DNA of 64,000 nt, taken from Tubulanus polymorphus. Lineage: Eukaryota > Animalia > Nemertea. A program made the position numbers and the translations under genes. Positions 6,001-44,409 of this stretch are shown piece by piece (the first letter of the stretch is position 1; every line of letters begins with the position of its first letter). The DNA lies in the NCBI RefSeq assembly GCF_964204645.1, contig NC_134032.1, positions 8,792,275 to 8,856,274 on the forward strand. The letters are read 5' to 3'. The notes under the pieces are model-generated. The model was not told the origin of the DNA. It saw nothing but the letters and a program-made list of their open reading frames with translations, and searched no databases.

Positions 6001-9000
6001 TTCCATCTGATTTATCAAATCCTTGTTTAATCAATTACCTCTGATGACGATCCCGATAAAATTGTTAACAGATCCGCGTCGAGTACGAGGTAGACCGCTG
6101 AAAATGACGAACATTCGGGACACGGCAGGTATAGCATAGTTTAACCCCCTAACACCTATCACCACCTAACCGACCCCTTTTCGACCTGCATTCGATAGCA
6201 AACGGATCGATCTGAGAATAATTGCCTCGAAAATAAAATTTGAAAAAAAAATCTTTAAATGAAATTATTAGACTCATTATCGTTATCATCGTCTAATCTA
6301 TACGTATCACGCATATTTTATTCAACTCCAAATTTTTTTTTCGTATGTGAATATCTTAGATACGGACATTTTTAAATTCGGATACTTTGAACCTCGGAAA
6401 AAATCTGTGCCGTAATAACTTCAGTGAATGGATTCATTCAGGAATATAATTCAATTTTGATTATTTTTTTGGAAATCTTGAACAGTCTTTGTACATTTCA
6501 TTTATTCTCTTTTATCATTTTCGGCTTGATCAGATTTGTTTTGTTTAATAAACTTGGTTTTCAAATTTATTTAAGACTCATTTGATGTAAAACTAATTCA
6601 ATGATTTAGACATTTTAAAATGTTAATCAATCCATTAGGAATTTGACTACAAATACGTTTGTACAGTGTTTAAAAGAATTCATTTTACCTAGAATAATTA
6701 AATAACGATAATGCCCCACAATGATGATTTAACAATAATGCCCCACAATAATGATTTAACAATAATGCCCCACAATAAACACGTTCCCAAATGTTTTGAT
6801 ACTTTCTCAGTTTGTATCAAAAATATTGCCAATTTCTGGTCCTTGAGTCCTGAAAAATGATAAATTTACAGCGCAAAATCGTACAAACGTGTCAATTATA
6901 CTTCTAAACACTTTATTCGCGGACCAGTTTATGAATTGAGCCTGGGCCATAGAGCGCTTTATCCGCCTGTGATCTCGACTTTCAATTTATTACGTAAGCT
7001 ATTCGTGGACAAAATGCGGCCGGCGCATAATAGAAACTTCGCTCTATGTATTCTTTCATTACCGCCGACAAAGAGGACCGATATTTCGCAAATTGGATTC
7101 GGGAGGTTTAAACCTCCCAAGGTCAAATCACTAAAATTGTGACCTTCGTGGAGATTATCTAAAAAGCCGATGGTAATCAAATTTAGCAGAACTTTTTACC
7201 CAAACGTTCAATGGTTTGAAAATCTTTCAATGGCATTCCTAAGTATTTGATGAAAGTTGAGAAATCATAAGATATTCATAAAACAATGGACTCTAAAACC
7301 TAAATCGTTTAAGAGTCCCTGATATAAAAAAAACTTCGCATAACGAAGAAGCAAAAATTCGAATCTGATTCATCTGTTTGGAATTGATTCTTATGAAATG
7401 GAAACAAATGCGTGAACACTACTCATTGATTCGTTCATTATTGTACAATATGTTTTATTTGTTGACCGTAAGACGTTGACATTATGTCAATTTCATTCAA
7501 TTTACTTTGCGGCTTTACAACGGCTATTTCACTGGTTCTGCGTGATGAGATAATTCTGATTAAAGTTATTGTATTAATTTCTACATGTATATACGTAATG
7601 ATACTCTTTCTGAATAAAAGATGCACGTTATTCGAATCCCCACCATTGTTCTCTACAATGTACGTTAATCAAACTCACGATAAAACCAGAGCCAAAACCA
7701 TGGACTCAAAAACGAAGAATCCGTGGTCAAACATGCAATTCTAATTTCCCCGTTAGTTCACTGATGCCGTCAGTTTCTATCGAATGCAAGGATTCTAGCC
7801 AATCAGAGAGGCGCATGTACACATCCATTGGCATGTTAGTTATAGTACAACTTAGATAATAATCAAGGTTCGAGCCAATGTCAGTATCTAGAATATGTTC
7901 TTTCATCAAATACAAATAACTCAGCAGTAGTCAGTTAGTTGAGTTTGTTTGACTTGTTTTGTATTTCATCAATCAATCTATTTCATTTTAGTATCAAGTA
8001 CCATCTAAACGCTTGAATTGCTTATAACACGACCAGGTATGAATTAGAATAGATCGGCTTAATATTTCGAATGCAAATTTGCCGATTAAGCAATCGGAAA
8101 TTCGAAGTGCTTGAGAAATTTTTCAATACGCACATTACTTCGAATAGCGATAAGTTCATTGACACATGTGACAATTGTTTTGTTACTTTCGATAGCGAGT
8201 CGAATAAGCTATGCGACAGCTAACGACAGCACAATCGCAATATCAACAGAAGTTCATTTTATCCTACACGATGAGGCTAAATTCAGTGAAATCGATCCTG
8301 TTCTGAAATAAATATTTTCCTTGATACATTTTGTTTATTGTAGCGATTCTATGCGGTTTATACATTAACCTACTATAACATATTTGACCGTTTTCAAGAA
8401 CCCAAAAATTACAATTTTCTGGGAATCTGTTTTTTTTTCAAAAACAACCCAAACCCGAAATTGTGTACAGTTAGTACGCAGCGTATATAATGTCGGATTA
8501 GAGAATATTGAAAAAACTTAGAAAAAGTTCAGTGAAGGAAAATAAGCTCAGCAGTGACAAATTGTCATTTCATCCCCTTCACGTGATTAATTGATGTCCA
8601 AATATGTTCTACCGTGAAAACTCTGCATTTAGTGTCAAACGAATTTTTGTATACGTATCTCAGGATGCATTCTCTTCAAAAAGGTAGCCTATTAGGAAAA
8701 AACTTACCCGGTAAAATCCTAATTTGTCCTAAACGATATTCCAACTATTATTTTGTTAATTATTCAACTATCATCACTAACTGAGTAAGTTAGTTGAACT
8801 TACATAAAGATATTTCATTAGGGACACTTCAATTTCACACCATTCAATATCATAAGGGAACAAAATTCTTTGAAACTTTGTAGTTCTTAAGACTAGGTTT
8901 TGTTTCCGAAATTTACTAAATGCACCAATTCTAATAATTCACTCATTGAAGCTTCTATACATAAGAAGCGAAAGCTCGTGCGTCGAAATAAAGAGTTTAA

Positions 9001-12000
9001 CCTTTAAAGTACTACTCGTCTCTTCATTTAAATTCAAATAATATAAGTCTTTGTTGATTCTTTTTTGTTGGAATATGCATAACTTTTTCTGGGCAAATTT
9101 CTATATTCTGTCGAGTCATGGACTCTAAAACGATGGTCAAGGTATTTTGGCTATAAGGAATATAACTAACTCCCTGGGGCAACGATGTGGCTGATGAAAT
9201 GATCTCTCCCATTGTAATCCCACCATTTAATCACTCATTGTATAACAATCTCTCAATTAAGCCTCGGACTCTTAAACGAATTATGAGTGCATGCTTTAGT
9301 ATAGGCTCTGATATAGAGCATATTGTCTTGATTTAGAACATGTATGCATAAACTCTAGGCTGCAAAGAAATACGTTTTCAGCGGCTCTAATCGAGTTAAA
9401 TCTTTCGTGATAGATTAACACAGAGAGGCGGCACCCAATCGCTGCTTATTGACATTAGGCACAAGCCACTGTTATGTTCATTAGTAAAACTAATATAGAA
9501 TGAATAAGTGAGGAGGGAAAATGTATAAATTAGATTTATAAATGAATTTATAAAAATTTAGCATGCATCGGAGTGCACTTAAATTGGATTATTACAAAAT
9601 AACTCACTTCAAAATTTATGATATTGTTTCATTGATATTTATTACTTTAAAGCAATTCACTTTAAGAACTTTGGTCAACAATAAGTCTGACCTGCAAATC
9701 AAATCATCGGGAGACAAAATACTGCTTCAAAAAATTATATTGCTAATACATTCCTAATCTCAACCTTTCGCCATAAACCTACTGGATTTAGGGCCTGGGG
9801 CATTTTAGATGGTTGTAGGTAAAAATCCCCTAGGTAAAATCCTCACTTGGCGATTTTTCAAGAACGTTTGAAAGCACGATATTTATTCAAACATATTCAT
9901 TCACAATAAAACTGCAATATATTTTAACTGTGCATTGAACTCTTTTGTTGAAATAAATCTTTAAATAAATTTATAGAATAAATGAAATTAATGAACTTTT
10001 TATTCATACTATCTTTTAATTCGAACTAAATAACTCTTTTTAACTTGTGGTATATTTCACTGTGCTGTGCGATAAAATATTAGAAATAAAGAACTCTTAA
10101 TTTGGAATATCTTAACTTCGAGCTTGTAATATATTTTAATTGGCGATGAAATCTTTTTAACTTGCGAGCGATGTGAACTGTGCGATAACTTTAAGCATTA
10201 TTTAAGTATTAATGAACTGTTAATTTGTCGTATTTCCTAATTTCATTTGTACAATAATAAGTATGCTTATGATATGGATTCGATTTACGTATCAATATTT
10301 TCATGTTGACGGGGGCCTGATGATGGCTAATAGCATTAGCCGAAACATTGCTCGTAGAACATTTGATTTTTAGCTGAATTCATTGTGGGATTTGTCTCGT
10401 TATTCACCATACACGGATATTGTGTATTTTCTTCTCATTTTCATGTTGGTTTTGAACAACTTAAATTTTGCGATTCTAAAACCTTATTAACTTTAGATGA
10501 CAGTAATACCTTCAATTTACATGTAAAATATGATCACTGCTGAAAGTGTAATAAGGAATATATATTTACTCCAGTGACAATATTTTGATTCAAAGATTTA
10601 ATTCAATCATCTAGTCTGAGTCTGTATGGTAAAACTTCTGGCTAACCAAGAGCTAACCGAATACCGGTATATAGAAGGTGGTCGCTTGAAAATTAGTTAA
10701 TTTACGCAACAGGAATCTATCTTGATTTCAAGGGCACTCCAATTAGGCCTAATCGTTTCAATAGTGACCACTGTAAATTAGCCAGTAGTTTAAATGACCG
10801 AATTCAATCAACCGATTCGTATCCTAAGAATGAGAATTGTATCTAACCACAGTAGTTATTCCTCATCAAACGTTCGGTCATCATATTATACATCTATACA
10901 TCATTACTATCATCTTCAGTTAATAGAAGTGCAATAAAATCTAGAATCTATGAGTTGAGTTTTTTTGAACATAATAAATTGTGTTGATTTTATGTTAGTT
11001 AAATCAAATATTTGGAATATTTTACCGGGGGATTTTTACTTTGGGGATATAACCTAAATTATTTTATATCATCGGTTTTCATTAAAAAAAAAAGAACTAT
11101 TAATCTTAACTACACTTATATTCCTTTTGGAACATTAAGATTCTTTCATTGAATTTAATATGTTATTTCGTACAATAGTTCATCACAGTGCGTCATTCAC
11201 GCTTAAATGTACAAAACTTCTTTACAAAGTTCAAAATATAAACCAACAATCTCATCTCAAGCATGTACTAGCGCTGACGCTATGGGATAAAACCAAGTCT
11301 CGATTCATTGCCTAAAATGTGGGTACATTCATTCAAATCAGGACTAAAATACGCTTATATGAATATCTTGCATGATATCATTTTACAGGGTGTCTCATAG
11401 GCCTGGTTTTACTTGTACATTGTCATCAATTAATTAAACATCCCAAGTAACTTCTTTATTTACTTATGGCTTAATCACTGGTATTCAATAGCTAGTCGGC
11501 TATAGAAAGACTAACCCGATAAAATTCCATTAACCGTTCGTCCAGAGTCGAACACTCAGGCGTTAATTCGCAACGATTTTAAAGAAAGAAAATGATTGCA
11601 TGAAATCTAGTTTTGGTATCAATCGGCGTCCAATCTCTTAAACCATCCTAAACACAGAAGGGTAGTAGTTTGTGTCTATTTGCTTTTGCTGATGTCATTT
11701 AACATAACAATGGAAATGTATTCGTTTATTTGGAAATTATATGAAGATATGGAGTAATCATGTGACAAATCAAATTATTACTGCAAGGCAAAACATAGCG
11801 CACTTCAGATATATGATATGGCCTTAAAGACTTTTCATATATTAACAGTCCATTTTAACGTCTATTGATATGAATAGTCCAGTTTTGATATGACTGTCGC
11901 AACAGTTGGAATAAAACCTATGAAATCTAGGAGCATTTATCTCATGAAATTTAGATTTGAGATAATTGTATTGTATTATATGAGGATTAAACATTTCAAT

Positions 12001-24000: not shown

Positions 24001-27000
24001 CCTTACCGCGCTAAGACAGCATGGTATCCCTGGGTGGTATACCTGAAACAAAGAAAATGGCGGCGACTCATCTACACTTCGGCTATATTTGTTGAAAAAG
24101 AAAATCAACATAACTCATTAATCCACAATTAGATACTCGGAATCTAGTACCCTATACTCGTCAAGTGCCGTGCCCAGAATTAAGTACGCCCCAATAAATT
24201 CGCCTAAAATGTAAAGTTGAGCCTCGTTGATCATTGCGGGCAAAAGTGAAATTGTCGTATTAAAACTGGTTTCGTATTACACACAAATCGTAACTGATGT
24301 TATCTGGGACATGCTGCTGGAAATCATCGCGATAAATGGGTTTCGTCTAAAACGGAATCGCATTTACGAGGTTCAACCGTATTTCCTTTTGTTCAAATAC
24401 GTTGTGCTGTAGTATATCAATGCATTTTTCGAGATTTTAACTTGGACCTCGTCGCTTCGAAAACCGACTACACATCAGTAGTTTACCAGTCATGTACGAA
24501 CCTATATTTTGTGATTTGCGCATGTGTAATTCATGTGCGGCAGCTATAAACTAATCGTTATTTCACTTGCGATAAAAAAAACGGAAAAATTATCCAAGTC
24601 AGATGGAACAATTTGAATCTGATATCGAAAGTGCCGAGCGGAGTTTTTTTGTTTCCAGGTCGGTATCTATGTTAATGCTCATGTCACGCCTTTATTTTTA
24701 TTTGTTTACTTCCCGTAGACCAGAGAACGCTTCTGAATTTATACGCGCGTGAGATCCACCAGCAGGAGCAGACATACGGAATCAGAGACGAGTACAAGCG
24801 AAAACAGAGTTTGCTCTTTCAAACTCTTCATCCTCAGCCGGTGAGTTACAGCGGCATCTTGTGCACACAAATCGTCCCCACTGCTGTTCATCAAAAATAC
24901 CCCCTTGAAGACTTCCAGAAGAGATAACTGCCTCCATAAATCACCCTATGACATCATCAAACTACCCGTATAGAAATTTCCAGAACAGATGACTACCATC
25001 CCTATGAAATCATCTTAAGTCTTCTCAACATCCGGAAAAGGTTGCTGCATTCACGATCTCCCCCTCAGACATCATCAAATTACCCCTGGATGCCCTTTCA
25101 GAAAAGATAGCCCTCTGCACAAAATCTTCCTATGACATGGCTGTCTTCAAAGATTAATTTTCCCCAATGACATCATCAACATTCGTTCAATTTGCTTTTT
25201 TTACATACGAATAGCGCTCGCAAAAAGAATGTTTATAATGAAAAGTGTGTACAAGTGCGATGTTTTTACAATTTTGTAGGATTATGAGATGAATTTGTCG
25301 GAGTTGGAAGAGGCTTTGAAGATCATCAACCACAACCTCATCACCGAAAATGAGTTGAAATTCGTAATCCACGTGAGTAATTATAGGTGGCACTGATTCT
25401 GTTGAAAAATGAAACGAGACGGATAGTACTTTATAGTTTAACTAGTGTATTTTACACACGAGCTTTCGCTACTAGTGCATAGTGGCTTCATCAGGTGCGA
25501 ATTCGCCCGATAAAACTACTTTAAAGTTTAGTTGCGAAGACTCTTGCGAACGCCTTTTACTTGTTATATGCGCAATCATTGGGCAAGGCAGTCTCAGGCC
25601 AACATAAGCATGATTCATATTTATCAGAAAACCTTATAGTGTTTTCATGGCGAAGAATTCCACAGTAATAACGAAAATATATTACAAAGACCGAAAATGT
25701 TTCCTCGAGTTAGTAGTTTGTCATCCTCCCTCGGCCAGGGATTCGAATCTGATGGCATTGCTACACTCAGCCACGGCACGAACCCCTGTCGCACTACCGG
25801 GTACGCAGGTACGTATGTGCAGCTTTGCCACACGAGAACTTGCGGCACCAATCAGATTGCTCGATGTATAATTGGAGGTAAATTTCAAGGAAGAACTATA
25901 AACGGAAAAACCCGGCGCTAATATAAAACGGGATATCTGATTGGCTAGTAATCATCTAAGGCCAAATTTGGTTTCCGTATCTAGTCGACTAGTAGTCGGA
26001 ACTAATAACCGAATGCGCTTGATTTTCGAACTATTTCCGGAATATAGTTCCGACTAACGGACATTCGGTTTCCTTTAGTTCGACTAGTCGACTAACTCAG
26101 ATAACCGAAGGTGACCTAAGCTGTGCGTGTAGCTGCGCACTCCGTCTAGTGCGGCAGGGTTTCGTACCGTGACAATCTCGATACCATCATGCCATCGAAC
26201 CCTGCCGGGGGAGGATGGTAATTTGTTCGACGTTTCGACTATATTCTATAGTCATTTCCAGGAAAACCGACAGCTATACATCCTACGCATTTTCACTTTA
26301 GGTCTATTAATCACGTACCGTATTTTAATCTTATTGTGAATCTGAAATAAGCTCATTGTTTACAGTAAATAATGCAATATTCTCCTGTCATGCCTAAACA
26401 TATCCACATTATAGGTATTTGAACTGCTAGTAGATTGGGCGACTAATTCATACAATGGATTCTTTTAAACGACGTTTTGCGGTGTCAAAAGTCTTATCAC
26501 GGTAATCTACGGATGTCGTGATGAACGGATATACGATAGCTGTCGCCGGGGCGGATCTTGCCTAGGTTTCTTACTACTCATCTGTGGAAGGGCAACTACA
26601 TCTTCGTCCAATACGGGGGTCAGTAGACGCTCCCCAAAAGAATTTTGAAGGTGAAGTTTTAGGGGTCTGGAATGCAATTCGAGCACATCTGGGGCATCGA
26701 ATCTATCAACATAATATGCCATTTTGTTTCATTTATAAAAGAAATAAGAAGTTTACCACATTTGGATTATTGAAATATTGACCGTTTCTATTACTGTGAC
26801 GAACAATTTGAAAAGTAGAAGGGTATTTCCACAAACCTGGGAACCGCTGTTAGCGGAGTAGTAGCGGTAGGCTGCATCCGCCCTTGTGCCGTTAGAACCG
26901 CAGAATATTCTTTTCTCTGGTCGATCATCTCCTGCCTTATACCACAGCGCGCCCATTACATGACATTTGGGATTCGATAAAACTATGGAATAATTTGTCT

Positions 27001-28219: not shown

Positions 28220-28280
<61 letters not shown>

Positions 28281-35694: not shown

Positions 35695-38600
35695 ATGACC
35701 GGCACGGTGGCGCTCGATCAAAAGAATGAGGTTAGTTGATTATATTTCAAACGAATGAGTTTTGTTATATCGAATCGGACTCAGACTTGTTTATCGATGA
35801 AAAAATAAGCGCCAAATCGAATTGTCGATTTCAAATTGATCAGTAATCTGTTTAGCAAAGTGAAATTGATATAAATGAGTATTATTGACGCAACTTAAAT
35901 ATTGACAAAAATAACAACTTCGATTTTTTCACCTCATATGAAACAAGTTTAGTTATTCACATTTACAAGAATTTGCAGGGTTTAGACATGCATAGTGGGA
36001 CGTAATACGAGCCTGTGGCTGTTCTTATCGGCATTTTCAAGGCATTGTGCCCACGCGCTTTAATTAAGTGCGAAGTTCAATAGAATTAGAATCCTATAAT
36101 TGATGATAATACTAATAATTGATAACGATTAATTATTATAGTTCTCAAAGTAATAGATAGTAATTATTAACAAAAATTATAATAACATATATGATGAAAA
36201 TTTTAGTAAAAATATCAACAACGATAATGATAACTAATGATGTTAAAATGATAATGGCGACAAGAGTCAATGACAGTGACTGTACGAATAATTGTATAAA
36301 AATTGTAATAATAGTACTAATAATTAATGAAAAATGATTATTATTATTACGGTACTGATAGTCAATAGTCTTGTGGTACTCATTTGAAATTGATACCATA
36401 TTAAAATCAATTCGATGATTGGTTGATAGTCAATATTAGGGCGGTACGTTATTGATATCACATTCGATTGCAAATTGATTATTGATTAGACTGATATCAA
36501 ATTGATTTTAAGAAAACAATGTAAAATGGAATTGATATTAGAAAAAGAAAAATTGAAATTCATATCGATTGATTAAGTTTTAACATAAAACCTTAATGTT
36601 GCGGTTTATAATTGTTGATATTTCTTGTTCGGCACATAAATGGTATAAGAAATCGATTGTTTCAAACTAGCGTCCAAACCAAGAATGATTATTATTATTA
36701 CGGTACTGATAGTCAATAGTCTTGTGGTACTCATTTGAAATTGATACCATATTAAAATCAATTCGATGATTGGTTGATAGTCAATATTAGGGCGGTACGT
36801 TATTGATATCACATTCGATTGCAAATTGATTATTGATTTGACTGATATCAAATTGATTTTGAGAAAACAATGTAAAATGGAATTGATATTAGAAAAAGAA
36901 AAATTGAAATTCATATCGATTGATTAAGTTTTAACATAAAACCTTAATGTTACGATTTATAATTGTTGATATTTCTTGTTCGGCACAGAAATGGTAAAAG
37001 AAATTGATTGTTTCAAACCAGCGTCCAAACCAAAATATTTAAGTATGGGACCTTAGTATATATATTACTCCCTAAATTTTGTGAAATACTGCTGATAAAC
37101 GGCATCTCAAGGACGAATAAACTATTTTGATCTATTTTTCCGTTTCCGGCCAGAAGTTGCGATGTTTTGCTGAATTCCATGGTTGCGTTTACTACGTAGC
37201 TTATACATTGAACGGATATCTTTATAGAAACAAATTCAGGCTATGTACAACTGAAACCTTCACACGACTGAGACGCTATTTTGAAATTAATATTAAAATA
37301 TTTATCAAAAAATACGTTTATTTCTTTTTTCAGGGTGAAAACGCTTCGTCGGCTGATACTTCAACCGTTACCATGGAAACGACATTCACACCGGACGATA
37401 CTACGTCAGAGCCCTCTGGCGGATTGACGCGTACTAAACACGATACGAGAAGTAAGTGAAACCCGGAAAAGATACGAAATAATTTCTGTGTATCGATTGT
37501 GCAACTGAGCCCTAGATCCAGTGAACGTGAATTAGCCTAGCCAGCGCCGCACCTAGAATTTCCATTGGGCTGGGTTGGAAGGGCAGAGAAAACCGAAAAT
37601 GGGAAATAAGGATACAGGGAAGTTAGGATTAAACGATGATATTTGCAAAAATGGCACTTTCCGAAAATTTCTGCGACTGCACCCTTTGACCCCGCTGAAT
37701 ACGGCCCCGATGGGTTTTACGATCGTTCTAAACGCGGTTAAAGCTCAACAAACCAGCCAAACTCTTTTGTGTTCGGAAATGTAATTAATCTTACTAATAA
37801 CCAGTTTAAAATTATTAGAGTGCTTTTGAAACAGGGTTCTCTGTGGTATTCGCAGCGCTACTGCTGCAAACGAGGATTTCACTTTTGGCAGGCGAGGATC
37901 TACCAGGAGTCGCTTGTAGGTGTAGTTGGTCATCCCCTTTTTCGTCTACGTTTCAATTAAATATGAAGGAACTTTTCTCTTAAATGAATCAACTATTTTT
38001 GGTCGAGTATATTTGGTGGGTGCTGTGATAGTATATGGATTCGGGAGCCTAAAAATCGAGTACAAAGTTCATCAAAAATGAACTACTTTTGACCGGACGT
38101 CCTACTGCTCGTCACGCCATCTGGTGGGATGGCTGGTGTTGCGGATTCCCCAATGCCTTCCTGATCGAAATAACGCATTTCATCGTTCCTGTTGATTTAC
38201 AGAGCTGAAAAATACCAAGCGACTGTCGGCGTCTCAACAAGGTGCCGGCCTGGCAGACAACGAATCCGCAGGAACTACAAGTGTCAACAAACCCGGGCGA
38301 AAATTCAACAAATTCTGCATAATAGCCGCATTTTCACTGGGAATTATTATTGTAGGCAGCGTAGCTGTATTCATCGGTAAGTATAATAGAGTTACAGTGG
38401 AGCCCCAATACAGCAAACTTGACGGGACCAGAATATGTTCGTTATAACCGACAGTTCATTATATGCAGTGTGGAATCAATTAGATTTTTTTAAGTACTTG
38501 GGACGAAAGTCTATATTGGTTATATCCGATGAATCGTTGAATGCGAGTTCGTTATATCGAGGTTCCACTGTATTTCCCAAACACATCGGTTCACCAAGAA

Positions 38601-40644
38601 CCAACGTGTCTGTTCTAGTCGCTTACTCGTGGTTGTTTACACCAAAATAGCCACTAATCTTAATCTCTAGTCACTTGATAGTTCGGACTATATGGCCTTA
38701 ACGGTCATTCCAAAATACAATACTGGACCAAACGTAGTATTTGCAGAACTATTTCATTATAAAGAGCTCGTCTTGTAATCTAACATTGATATTCTTTTAG
38801 TATTTAGATTCCAGCAGCCGAAACAACAGCAGATTACTTCTACAACACCTGGCGCAGACCCAAATCCAGGTAAATATGATAATACTGCCGTCAATCGGCA
38901 CAACTCGGAATCGCCCCTTAAACTTGAACCAACCACACCTTGGAACCATAATTCAATTCTTAACTAATGCCGGAAGCGTCCTTTCAACCCAGTACCCCCC
39001 CCCCCCTATCATGGAACCAGCTCCAACTAGAACCATGCACCGAGACACACCGGAGGTACCCATGCATCTTAGAACGTATTCCTCTCATATTGTGAAACTA
39101 TTCCCTCAGCTAGGAACTACCCGTCAACCGAGGACAATCCCATCAGCTACCATGACCTGCCTCCTGGAACTAGCCTCCCATCAAATTCCTTTCATTCTGG
39201 AACTCCCAGGCTTACAACTAGCAGTACATTCAATCCATTGCAATATCAGAATGGTACAAGTGTCGAAGTGCATTTCATATTTAGAAATGTATATCCAATT
39301 ATCAGACATACCATGGTATAACTGGTTAGATATGACAATGAGTACGTAATATGATAGTATAATCTCGGTAGTATTTGAAAATCATATCAGCCTTGAATAG
39401 CCCCTGCCCCATTTCCCTGGCCCGACTAAACACTAATTGGTCAATTATCTGCTGTTTATGACTGTCTTGTAGGAGGAATTCCACTCCCCAACAACGGCTC
39501 GCGTCAAGTACAAACTGCAACAACAGCAACGCCACCACCGCCACTGCAACAAACTACAGCGAGTATCGATGACGTCGCAACGCCACCATCGTCCACTAAC
39601 AATACGGAAAACCAGGGCAATGATAGAACAACGGATCCTATAATCGGAGGACAAAACTCAGGGTCTGATAGGATGAGGCCACCTTTAAATCGCATGCGTG
39701 GTGGCCCCGGACAGGGTACAGGTCTCCGTGCCATGGTATCTCCATTAGGTGGCAACACAAGTCAGGGTGCAGGTGTTAATACCAGAATTTCCGCTTCAAC
39801 TGGCAGTACTGGTCAGGGAGCAGGCGTTAATAACAGGATCTCCCCTTCAGGTGGCAGCACTGGTCAGGATGCAGGTGTTAATACCGGTGTTAATACAGGT
39901 GTTAATACCAGGATTTCCCCCTCAACTGGCAGTACAGGTCAGGTTGCAGGTGTTAATACCAGGATTTCTCCATCAGGTGGCGGCACGGGACAGGCTGCGA
40001 GTTTCAGAATGAGGGTGTTTCGAGGAAGGGGCAGTATTGGTAGTAATTCAGGCGGTGGGAGCACAGGTGGAGGGAGCACCGGCACTGAAAACACAACTGG
40101 AGGGAGCACGGGCATTGGAAACACAACTGGAGGGAGCACGGGCACTGAAAATACAACTGGAGGGAGCACGGGCATTGTTAATACATCTGGAGGGAGCATG
40201 GGCACTGGAAACACAACTGGAGGAAGCACGGGCACTGGTAACACGGGTGGAAGGAGTACGGGCACTGGAAACATGGGTGGAGGGAGCACGGGCACTGGAA
40301 ACACGGGTGGACGGAGCACGAGCCGCACGAGACAGGCTGCGAGTTTTAGAATGAGGATATTCCAAGGAAGGGGCAGTATTGTTAGTACTTCAGGCGGTGG
40401 GAGCACAAGTGGAGGGAGCACGGGCACTGAAAACACAACTGGAGGGAGCATGGACACTGGTAACACGGATGGAAGGAGCACGGGCACTGGGAGCTCGAGT
40501 GGAGGCAATATGGACACTGGTAACACTGGTGGAGGGAGAACGGGCACTGTTAACACTTTTGGAAGGAACATGCGCACTGGGAGCTCAAGTTCTAATATGA
40601 CGGGTAACAGTAACCCAGACACCGGGGATTTTTTCAACATTTAA
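35695..40644 (+). CDS. Type II single-pass membrane protein with Gly/Ser/Thr-rich tandem-repeat ectodomain, ~522 aa
   Basis: Exons 35695-35730, 37334-37451, 38203-38376, 38801-38869, 39473-40644 with GT-AG junctions and matching phases (1569 nt); basic stretch then hydrophobic segment KPGRKFNKF-CIIAAFSLGIIIVGSVAVFIVF; last exon includes ORF 39673-40644 with GGSTGTGNTT-type repeats. First exon is the least certain. Confidence 0.75.
36333..37033 (+). repeat. Near-perfect direct tandem duplication, 351-bp unit x2
   Basis: 36333-36683 vs 36684-37033 differ at only a few positions. Confidence 0.9.
37887..38130 (+). mobile_element. Dispersed repeat, homolog of 20965-21252
   Basis: Shared tggcaggcgaggatc end and gtcacgccatctggtgg motif. 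Confidence 0.65.
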
Positions 40645-40719: not shown

Positions 40720-40896
<177 letters not shown>

Positions 40897-41644: not shown

Positions 41645-42958
41645 TTTAATTCAATTCTTTATTGATCCTTATTACATTGATATTCCGGGATAAAATTCCC
41701 ATATTCAATAAATACAAATTTTAAGATAAATTAACACAACATACATGACACACGGGTAATTCATACAGAACAACATAAGCATGTTATTTTAAATGACAAT
41801 GTCTACTTCAACCCACCCAGACTCAAGACTCTAGGATATCGAGTGACAGCCAAACCCGTGGCCCGGGCCCGGGGACCGGGCCGGCTGGCTAGGCCACACG
41901 ATATGCTCGAAGTCATAATGAAGCAGACATCAGAATAGCTCTTTCTTCATCCATGGAGGCAATGAAGTTGCAGACCAGCTTAGAGGCATAAGTAAATGAA
42001 GTCGGTCGCAAGTTCGCGATCAATTATTGAGAATTTTCAATAAAAAAATTTAAACCACTACTAGAGTCGAAGACCTGTATCATCTACCCAATCGCCAAAT
42101 CTCATCATTCCCCAAATTTCTTAAAACTTCGATTTCAAATTTGCAATTCCACATTAGCTTAGTTCAGAAATTCTACATTTTTTTCCCAGGCGTCAAATAA
42201 TTTTCTAAAATTAATTTTCTTGTTAGATATGTGTACGAATCCCGTCAGTTCCACGATGGTGTGGGTTTAATTTGACTCTGAATCCGTTTCCACAGTTGTG
42301 GGAGTGTAATCTGATTCTGAATACAGTTCCACACTGTTGTGTGGGTTGAATCTGATTCTCAATACAGTTCCACAGTTGTTCCCAGTTCCAAACTAGTTCG
42401 CAAATGAATTTATGTCGAGATAATAACTCGACATGAAATAAAATGGTTTTTTTTCATAAAAGATGTCCCCAGGACGGCGGTGGATCTCGACGGAAAATCG
42501 AATTATGAGGAAAATTTCTGAATTTATGTCGATATACTAGCCGCTTTCATCAGCTTTGGGGTAATGACGCATGCGCATTGCGGAACAATACGGCGCAAAA
42601 TGAGCCCAGTTGCCGCACAAGAAAGCGCACTTTGCGCTGCGTCGAAAAAATATCAAACATCGCCAAGAGCCGAATAATGCGGACGCAAAGTGCGCAGCGC
42701 AGTTTTCGGCTCGTGTGCTGGTGATTTTTCCGGCGCATTTTGCCGTTGTTCGCCAAATATCTGACATGTTCGACATTTTTCGACGCGTATACTATCACGT
42801 GGGAGGGGAATTCTGACTCTGACTCTAGTTCAACAGATACGTCGGTTAAATGCAACTCTTTTTTATCGTGAATTCGCTGGATAGTTTTGCCTTTACTACT
42901 GGGCTGGTTATCAAATATCATTACACGGATAAAATCGTAGAGGAGCCATGTAGGCCAG

Positions 42959-43699
42959 GTGTAGAATAAAATCAACGAGACGAGTAGTACTGTATACCTT
43001 TTAACTGTTTAATTCAACGCACGAGATTTTGCTTCATCGGGTGATTCAGTAGATGAAGCTGTGTATAGTAGCTTCATTGGGCGATTGAGTAGATGAAGCT
43101 ATAGTGTGCAGTAGCTTCATTGAGTGATCGAGTAGATGAAGCTATAGTGTAAAGTAGCTTCATTGGGTGATTGAGTAGATGAAGCTATAGTGTAAAGTAG
43201 CTTCATTGGGTGATTGAGTAGATGAAGCTATAGTGTATAGTAGCTTCATTGGGCGATTGAGTAGATGAAGCTATAGTGTGTAGTAGCTTCATTGAGTGAT
43301 CGAGTAGATGAAGCTATAGTGTAAAGTAGCTTCATTGGGTGATTGAGTAGATGAAGCTATAGTGTGTAGTAGCTTCATCGGGTGATCGAGTAGATGAAGC
43401 TATAGTGTGTAGTAGCTGGGTGATCGAGTAGATGAAGCTATAGTGTGTAGTAGCTGGGTGATCGAGTAGATGAAGCTATAGTGTAAAGTAGCTTCATTGG
43501 GTGAATGAGTAGATGAAGCTATAGTGTAAAGTAGCTTCATTGGGTGAATGAGTAGATGAAGCTATAGTGTGTAGTAGCTTCAACAGGCGAATGAAGCCGA
43601 TGAAGCTACTATACATCAGCAGCGAAAGCTCGTGCGTCAAATAAAATCGTTAACCTATATATAGTAATATATACTTGTCTCGTTGTATTCATTCTATAC
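42959..43699. mobile_element. Fold-back element with inverted PLE pLTR-like arms bearing hammerhead motifs around a 43-bp satellite
   Basis: Left arm gtgtagaataaaatcaacgagacgagtagtac...caacgcacgagattttgc is the reverse complement of right arm gcgaaagctcgtgcgtcaaataaa...cttgtctcgttgtattcattctatac; right arm reads CCGATGA-A-GCTACT-atacatc-AGCAGC-GAAAGCTC-GTGCG. Confidence 0.8.
43030..43610. repeat. Tandem array, ~13-14 units of 43 bp (gtagcttcattgggtgattgagtagatgaagctatagtgtaaa)
   Basis: Period 43 (43068, 43111, ...); two adjacent units share a 5-bp deletion; each unit contains the inverted pair tagcttcat/atgaagcta. Confidence 0.95.
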
Positions 43700-44409
43700 G
43701 GATAGGTGTAATCTGCCCCCTGGAGGTAATTTCATAATCATACCGACTGCAAAATAATGCCTATAATAGCGTAGTTTCCATGTCCGGACACTACGGGATC
43801 CAGTTTTACGAATCAAAAATAATTTCGCTGCGGCAAGAGTAATAACCACAATTCAGAGACACCGATGATTCGTACACTATTCCACGATCGTGTCCCTTGA
43901 TCAACCATCTCAAGCCGTAATCCGCAAACAACCAATTAGTCAATTAAGTAATTAATGGATTTCGAAACTCGCGCGGGGTGCTCGCCGTCTGCCGGCTGGA
44001 GGGCGGAGTCATGTTATCAATTATTTTGACGAATGATAATTATCATCATTATTATCATCGTATTATCAGCGTCTAGATCCTTGAAAGACTGAGCCCGTTT
44101 GGCACTTAAAACCTAGGTTATTTTTGGGATCGGTATCGTCTTAAAGGAAATTCAGTTTTATAATTCAATTCGCACCGGATGAGCATGATAGGAGTCTTCA
44201 AAGTGGTCCCTGGTGTTTTTCAATTTATCTTCGTTTTGCAGAACTTTTCAGAGGACCCGGTTCAAACGAGGGATTAAAAAAAAAACGGCTGATTTTCGAT
44301 GAGCTGGTCTAGAGTCGATTTTGAATATCGGCCTAGCCTCAAATTTGTTGAATAAGTTTGATGCTATGGTATAAATTAGTTCATTTTTAATGTCTTCTTT
44401 ACTCAAGAA

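Follow-up and report, generated by a model that had tools for sequence, protein, structure and literature searches.

Endonuclease Penelope-like elements (PLEs) form insertions with inverted pLTRs (Evgen'ev and Arkhipova, 2005; PMC3846280; PMC8557442). An inverted, 5'-truncated copy is found beside the element, a tail of 30 – 40 bp is present at one end only, target-site duplications (TSDs) are about 8 – 10 bp long, and palindromes occur at the inverted junction (PMC8557442; PMC3846280). The protein of a lizard PLE was shown in vitro to cleave and extend both target strands and to start reverse transcription at two adjacent internal sites, the spacing of which equals the tail, with uncleaved RNA as the main substrate (PMC11167929). 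Minimal PLE hammerheads are recognized by a CUGANGA...GAAA core with H17 and an extra nucleotide between A9 and 10.1, and further by a G10.1-C11.1 pair, a helix II of 6 – 8 bp and palindromic 15.x-16.x positions that replace helix III and allow dimers; their cleavage is weak and occurs in dimers only (Cervera and de la Peña, 2014; PMC4209133). Tandem DNA is also derived from the PLE hammerhead region in metazoan non-LTR retrozymes and PLE-derived arrays, where the units are direct repeats, each with a whole hammerhead (Cervera and de la Peña, 2020; PMC7229834; Li et al., 2026 preprint, 10.64898/2026.07.22.740005).

The window analyzed here is the whole of a 64,000-nt stretch of the Tubulanus polymorphus genome. 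At one locus within it, two inverted arms with hammerhead remnants flank a 43-bp tandem array (Table 1). This locus and its relatives in the genome share with the published inverted-pLTR insertions the head-to-head inverted ends, the tail at one end, TSDs of a similar length, junction palindromes, a hammerhead in the repeat, and an open reading frame (ORF) with reverse transcriptase (RT) and GIY-YIG segments. They differ in that most copies are end-pairs only (~200 – 230 bp, without an ORF), more than ten times as frequent as copies with an ORF, and in that the junction of the window copy has been amplified into the array. The type I layout, CUGAUGA, the bulged nucleotide, a 7-bp helix II with G10.1-C11.1, GAAA, AGCU in place of helix III and a short helix I are shared with the minimal dimeric PLE hammerheads; in contrast to these, the window copies are mutated, and the motif is missed by Rfam models. 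Unlike the units of retrozymes, those of the array are palindromes taken from the junction, in which two half-hammerheads of opposite polarity are combined; they lack GAAA and are confined to one locus, and direct tandem units with a complete hammerhead, by which a retrozyme would be recognized, were not found in the array. We consider it highly probable that the locus is an old, decayed insertion of a hammerhead-bearing PLE 3' end, placed head to head, and that a local minisatellite later grew out of its centre.

The array was delimited by Tandem Repeats Finder (period 43, 13.1 copies, 91% matches) and parsed at each GATGAAGCT into 13 units (starts 43052...43555), ten of which were 43 bp, one 40 bp and two 38 bp long. 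A 43-bp tandem array between hammerhead-bearing inverted arms had been proposed in a preliminary description of this DNA and was recovered by both methods. The arms, given there as ~75 bp, were real; their length had been understated. Arm limits were set by sequence and BLAST, with the left arm taken from 42932 (including a ~30-nt terminal extension) and the right arm to 43697. Identity between the inverted arms was 82% in an outer block (42959 – 42986/43672 – 43699) and 73% in an inner block (42985 – 43033/43621 – 43669). The motif of the right arm reads CCGATGA-A-GCTACTA..CAGCAGC-GAAAGCTC-GTGCG. The left arm had been described as the reverse complement of the right with stem II deleted, and was read in this way, with the GAAA box lost as well. 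Folded as single-stranded DNA, the whole element reached -125.9 kcal/mol, compared with -58.7 ± 2.8 kcal/mol for shuffles. A second, unexpanded head-to-head pair, also reported earlier, was present in the window; its left arm had 82% identity with the family reference, whereas the right arm was strongly decayed. The 7-bp candidate TSD of the array-bearing element is weak by itself, since repeats of at least 7 bp were common to 10.6% of mismatched control flanks.

Table 1. Positions in the window of arms, array and associated features of the PLE arm family.
Feature	Position	Strand	Basis or remark
Candidate TSD, left copy (ACGGATA)	42925..42931		7-mer repeated at right arm edge
Long arm, PLE 3'-terminal ~126 nt	42932..43047	-	Minus-strand sense; BLAST q31-123, 78%
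Tail of long arm, ~30 nt	about 42932-42963		Part of the 42932..43047 arm
Hammerhead remnant in long arm, predicted dead	43018-43043		Without helix II, without GAAA box
43-bp tandem array, 13 units	43031..43582		Tandem Repeats Finder and unit parse
Short arm, without tail	43583..43697	+	BLAST to family reference q5-99, 75%
Hammerhead remnant in short arm	43597-43638		CCGAUGA (U4->C), helix II 5/7 pairs, GAAAGCUC
Predicted cleavage site, short arm	between 43631 and 43632		Helix I 5' strand missing
Candidate TSD, right copy (ACGGATA)	43698..43704		Abuts right arm
Second head-to-head pair, unexpanded, same family	25400..25550		Junction palindrome GCGAATTCGC
Second pair, minus-strand arm	25400-25499	-	Canonical CUGAUGA, GAAAGCUC, 5-bp helix I
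Second pair, plus-strand arm	25500-25550	+	Decayed
Solitary decayed arm, same family	8947..9022	+	BLAST q7-81, 76%; CTCATTGA replaces CTGATGA

The arms were confirmed, by collinearity with longer copies, as the 3'-terminal ~126 nt of a PLE of this genome. The right arm had at least 540 candidate matches in the 268-Mb genome, and those that were scored lay nearly all in minus/plus pairs, a few bases apart. A 23-mer that covers the GAAA box together with helix I had 586 genomic matches with at most 2 mismatches (reversed control, 0), giving a family of at least 586 arms, mostly in head-to-head pairs. In a few copies with long centres the arms ran on further 5', and an upstream walk from one such copy led to copies with at least 1.77 kb in common. 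One of these (L111:30-1400) carried an ORF of 456 aa, cut by the edge of the locus, in which the FIDD motif of RT and a GIY-YIG segment of the YIGETG type were recognized. By BLASTP it aligned over 453 residues with an 817-aa PLE ORF of the same genome (E = 7e-32), in which Pfam found both RVT_1 and GIY-YIG. When Pfam was run on the 5'-cut L111 ORF itself, RVT_1 scored 27.3 bits, below the cut-off, and GIY-YIG had no match in the C-terminal 116 aa. The arm starts ~295 nt past the stop codon of this ORF and forms the end of the element. Because the longer copies continue upstream into an RT + GIY-YIG ORF, the arms were assigned to the 3' end of a PLE; a PLE origin of the hammerhead ends had been anticipated in the preliminary description, as had a partner of the autonomous type with the same end, which L111 provides in ORF-bearing form. 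ORF-bearing copies of the arm family number only ~20 – 25; almost all of these are interrupted by stop codons, and the best frame that is still open has 626 aa. A search for the arm in 30 loci centred on GIY-YIG matches returned only one unrelated solitary fragment; the PLEs at these loci are of other families, in which the hammerhead differs.

Other PLEs of the genome were seen alongside this family. A second family with intact 817-aa ORFs (RVT_1 + GIY-YIG) was found at L066:3439-7490 (G000:C1:15.22 Mb) and L067:3237-8046 (C5:7.31 Mb), with copies arranged both in tandem and head to head and a minimal hammerhead (CTGATGA-T-GGCTAA..TTAGCC-GAAACGTT) ~326 nt past the stop codon. Open PLE ORFs of 830 aa, with only 34% identity to the arm family, recur every ~4 – 6.3 kb in long tandem arrays, all on one strand, close to contig ends (G000:C4:5184-70285, and the ends of contigs C30, C54, C63, C65, C10 and C34); these look like subtelomeric PLE arrays.

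The hammerhead columns were read from an alignment of 107 arms (A1), in which the solitary arm at 8947 – 9022 was a row. The CUGAUGA box was CTGATGA in 40 and CCGATGA in 17 arms, and was cut by the junction in the remainder. A bulged A followed A9 in 101/107 arms, the G10.1-C11.1 pair was present in 92/106, each of the GAAA columns (G12, A13, A14 and A15.1) was retained in at least 98/107, and the palindrome AGCU (A-GC-U) stood at the place of helix III in 104/107, as did C at the cleavage-site position H17 (C17; 104/107). Helix II has 7 pairs, which were paired in 87 – 91% of the arms. At position 10.4/11.4 of this helix, A-U was found in 39 arms, U-A in 32 and the intermediate U.U in 20. These counts amount in essence to a single compensatory change that splits two subfamilies, and covariation is thin. 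The L066/L067-type family has the motif CUGAUGA-U-GGCUAA..UUAGCC-GAAACGUU, which is of the same architecture with different helices and the palindrome ACGU. Since the architecture is kept despite different helices, this second family supports the hammerhead call better than does helix II covariation. The majority of arms retained CUGAUGA and GAAA with paired helices, in agreement with the earlier hammerhead reading. The features of the arm family agree with the four criteria for PLE minimal hammerheads (PMC4209133), and its motif is thus predicted, at the family level, to be a PLE-type minimal type-I hammerhead; the core is broken in the two arms beside the array. Rfam hammerhead models (RF00163, RF00008 and others) matched neither the window regions nor consensus-like copies, whether the gathering threshold or a cut-off of E<=10 was applied, as is expected of a motif without helix III. 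Rfam returned only miRNA-precursor hairpin look-alikes, which were caused by the fold-back.

The two arms that flank the array are judged to carry hammerheads dead by sequence, since the right arm has C at U4, 5/7 helix II pairs and no helix I 5' strand, and the left arm is without helix II and the GAAA box. An RNA fold of the short arm did not contain a hammerhead. A functional retrozyme-like ribozyme repeat that yields self-cleaving or circular RNAs would agree with the fit of the family motif to PLE minimal hammerheads; it is barely credible here, given these defects of both arms, the absence of the GAAA box from every array unit (0/13, as the preliminary description had stated) and a locus present in single copy. 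The locus likely has no present function. Were it transcribed, its RNA would be strongly self-complementary and would form a hairpin.

The form of insertion was examined at 68 loci, 40 of which were taken by position from the list of exact matches, and 49 head-to-head pairs were obtained in all. The position-picked loci held 27 pairs, in which a tail was present on one arm in 22, on both arms in 0 and on neither in 1, that is, on exactly one arm in 22/23 classifiable pairs. In one-tail pairs, the tailed arm extends to the distal end (...CTCTACGAATATTC) and its partner ends ~32 nt sooner (...CGTCTCGTTACTTA). Across the full set, the longer arm was complete (q123-126) in 38/49 pairs and both arms were complete in 0/49. 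Direct repeats of 9 – 14 bp, scored as TSDs of at least 9 bp, flanked 11/37 elements as against 4/714 mismatched control pairings (0.6%), so the TSDs for which the preliminary description had proposed a search do occur in the family, where their length varies from 7 to 14 bp. Pair junctions of the family are palindromic. As this matches the published signature of PLE insertions, the fold-back shape is read as the normal product of PLE integration and not as a MITE. The window element, with its left arm tailed, its right arm untailed and its 7-bp candidate TSD, has the same ordinary form.

The locus had previously been called a MITE-like unit. Inverted arms, short flanking direct repeats and a strong fold-back potential would likewise be seen in a DNA transposon of the MITE or fold-back type that looks like a PLE end without being one and is moved by a transposase acting on its inverted repeats. 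We regard this as very improbable: the arms line up with the 3' end of an element that encodes RT and GIY-YIG, they are consistently unequal, only one of the two being tailed, the length of the TSD is not fixed, and the inner ends are spread from -203 to +90 relative to C3. The equal terminal inverted repeats and the fixed TSD expected of such a transposon were not found in the arm family, and the arms belong to a retroelement where a transposase partner would be expected. What had been taken for a MITE is better described as a PLE end-pair.

The inner (5') ends of paired arms are clustered, 24/54 of them lying 8 – 10 nt upstream of the CUGAUGA box, and long copies have a conserved TATA box (TATAAATA) ~31 nt upstream of the cluster. 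None of the examined arms had its 5' end at the predicted ribozyme cleavage site, which agrees with the use of uncleaved RNA as the main substrate in vitro (PMC11167929). We infer, as to both start site and template, that a short transcript from the repeat's own promoter would have been copied in its full length into many of the arms. A more specific reading is that several hundred pairs are full-length cDNAs of a ~135-nt transcript from the pLTR promoter, with the hammerhead at its 5' end, and that they were made by symmetric two-strand target-primed reverse transcription with distal and proximal starts; this we put forward tentatively, as possible and on balance doubtful. If it is true, the pairs would constitute a natural, genome-wide record of a mode of PLE integration that until now has been observed in vitro alone, and their palindromic junctions, including the 13-unit array, could be sources of hairpin small RNAs. 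With at least 586 arms, one tail per pair and well-defined 5' ends a short way downstream of a TATA box, the arm family is a large natural sample of PLE end-pair insertions, on which the two-strand, two-start-site model from the lizard PLE could be tested. Arm identity was 88% within pairs and 85% between elements, a slight difference that is too small to tell a single-template origin. Identical junction types recur across loci, and some fold-backs could have been copied as fold-backs and not formed anew.

Two further pair types were noted. In one recurrent variant the second arm is only ~32 nt long (AACCTATA...GTTACTTA; L095:281-446, L107:282-445 and L094:285-443), with clear TSDs of 12 – 13 bp (TTGTATTTTTAAT and TGTTTCATCTAT). 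At L002:1470-1790 (G000:C6:9.759 Mb) there is a nested fold-back with two tandem hammerhead units per arm and a very short inner unit (~26 nt from the cleavage site to the next CUGAUGA), which suggests an inverted pair copied from a tandem template.

Minisatellites associated with palindromes or hairpins can in general be expanded by replication slippage or unequal exchange. The array shares with this general process the flanking short direct repeats, higher-order units and identical neighbours; it differs in that its direct repeats arise only through a self-complementary ribozyme helix present in two inverted copies. Each array unit consists of an antisense-type helix II hairpin, an antisense CUGAUGA box, a junction of 6 – 8 nt and a sense GAUGAA, and corresponds to the centre of an ordinary head-to-head pair. 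Because helix II is self-complementary, its two inverted copies show the same 7-mers (GCTACTA and TAGTAGC) in direct orientation. In compact ordinary pairs, helix II halves of the same polarity have a modal spacing of 43 bp, equal to the array period. This spacing and the unit parse both place the repeat junction inside helix II, where it had been placed before.

The array was compared with itself and with the family. Self-identity was 96.1% at offset 172 (four units) versus 93.0% at offset 43. Three sets of units are each identical in sequence (3, 4 and 7; 9 and 10; 11 and 12); units 9 and 10 are adjacent 38-bp units with one 5-bp deletion common to both. Most units have CATTGG where the family has CATC(A/G)GG, and the left edge of the array is still CATCGG. 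In nearly all units the C of GCTA[C]TA is lost and TAGTGT stands for TAATGT. On the strength of the offset-172 identity, the identical neighbouring units and the contrast of CATTGG with CATCGG at the left edge, we suggest that the array grew stepwise, by duplication at the DNA level after insertion. The last unit and the right edge have the junction variant GAATGAAGCC, as in L005, L011 and L019, and internal units have GAATGAGTA; simple duplication of the element's own centre does not fully explain this difference.

Template switching at stem II had been invoked earlier to account for the array. Under such an account, the array would have been made in a single insertion step, with the PLE RT switching template back and forth between the arms at the helix II hairpin. 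Self-priming and template jumps are both known possibilities in the formation of PLE junctions (PMC3846280), small extra pieces are present at the centres of five other pairs (L008, L013, L023, L092 and L098, the most that was seen in any), and the two founder changes, loss of the C and TAGTGT, are common to nearly all units. However, a sense-to-antisense junction through helix II was seen in 0/~75 other pairs examined, and a general pattern search for any such join found none elsewhere in the genome. The four-unit period of variants, the identical neighbours and the common 5-bp deletion fit the successive duplication of diverged units, and CATTGG in most units suggests that amplification followed a mutation acquired after insertion. 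Single-step synthesis is therefore unlikely in our judgement, and template switching is not required, as the repeated unit variants point to stepwise duplication of DNA.

The array was also sought in the whole 268-Mb genome. A 172-bp piece of it matched this locus only, and the unit-specific junction had 12 matches, all inside the array; of the two sequences for which a genome search had been envisaged, the arms were thus abundant and the array was found nowhere else. Neither many arrays nor a high unit copy number, as would be expected of a satellite, was found. The array is a private minisatellite and not a satellite family or a recurrent route. The preliminary description had called it satellite DNA and had seen in it a route from a ribozyme retroelement to a satellite or fold-back transposable element; since the array occurs at one locus only, no such general route is shown. 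For the same reason, an array without these arms, which had been named as counter-evidence to that proposal, does not arise.

Taken as a late amplification of an ordinary pair, the locus could have formed as follows. Short templates would have begun ~9 nt 5' of the hammerhead, ~31 nt downstream of TATAAATA, and would have been reverse-transcribed from both cleaved target strands, one strand using the distal start site and the other the proximal one. The two cDNAs would then have been joined head to head, so that the inverted helix II copies offered 7-nt direct repeats (GCTACTA, TAGTAGC) ~43 bp apart. Slippage or unequal exchange between these repeats may have doubled the centre, and more unequal exchange may have brought it to 13 units. 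With both hammerheads broken and the units without a GAAA box, the locus would now be inert.

By itself, the locus is a decayed transposon remnant with a private minisatellite, a curiosity of a known kind of element, and does not open a new class of element. Its value as an example lies in a self-complementary ribozyme helix which, present twice in inverted orientation, gives rise to the short direct repeats from which a tandem array grows.

Other repeats were noted in the window. A 41-bp x 2.9 tandem repeat (42259 – 42374) lies 0.6 kb upstream of the element and is by eye unrelated to it. About 2.3 kb upstream of the element, an open frame of 323 aa (39673 – 40644) is composed of Gly/Ser/Thr-rich repeats of 30 bp and 51 – 126 bp (GGSTGTGNT...) and possibly represents an exon coding for a secreted protein of repetitive sequence. 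A 351-bp unit is present twice at 36333 – 37033 with 97% identity, and perfect (TA)n microsatellites are found at 40727 – 40891 (82 units) and 28221 – 28276 (28 units).
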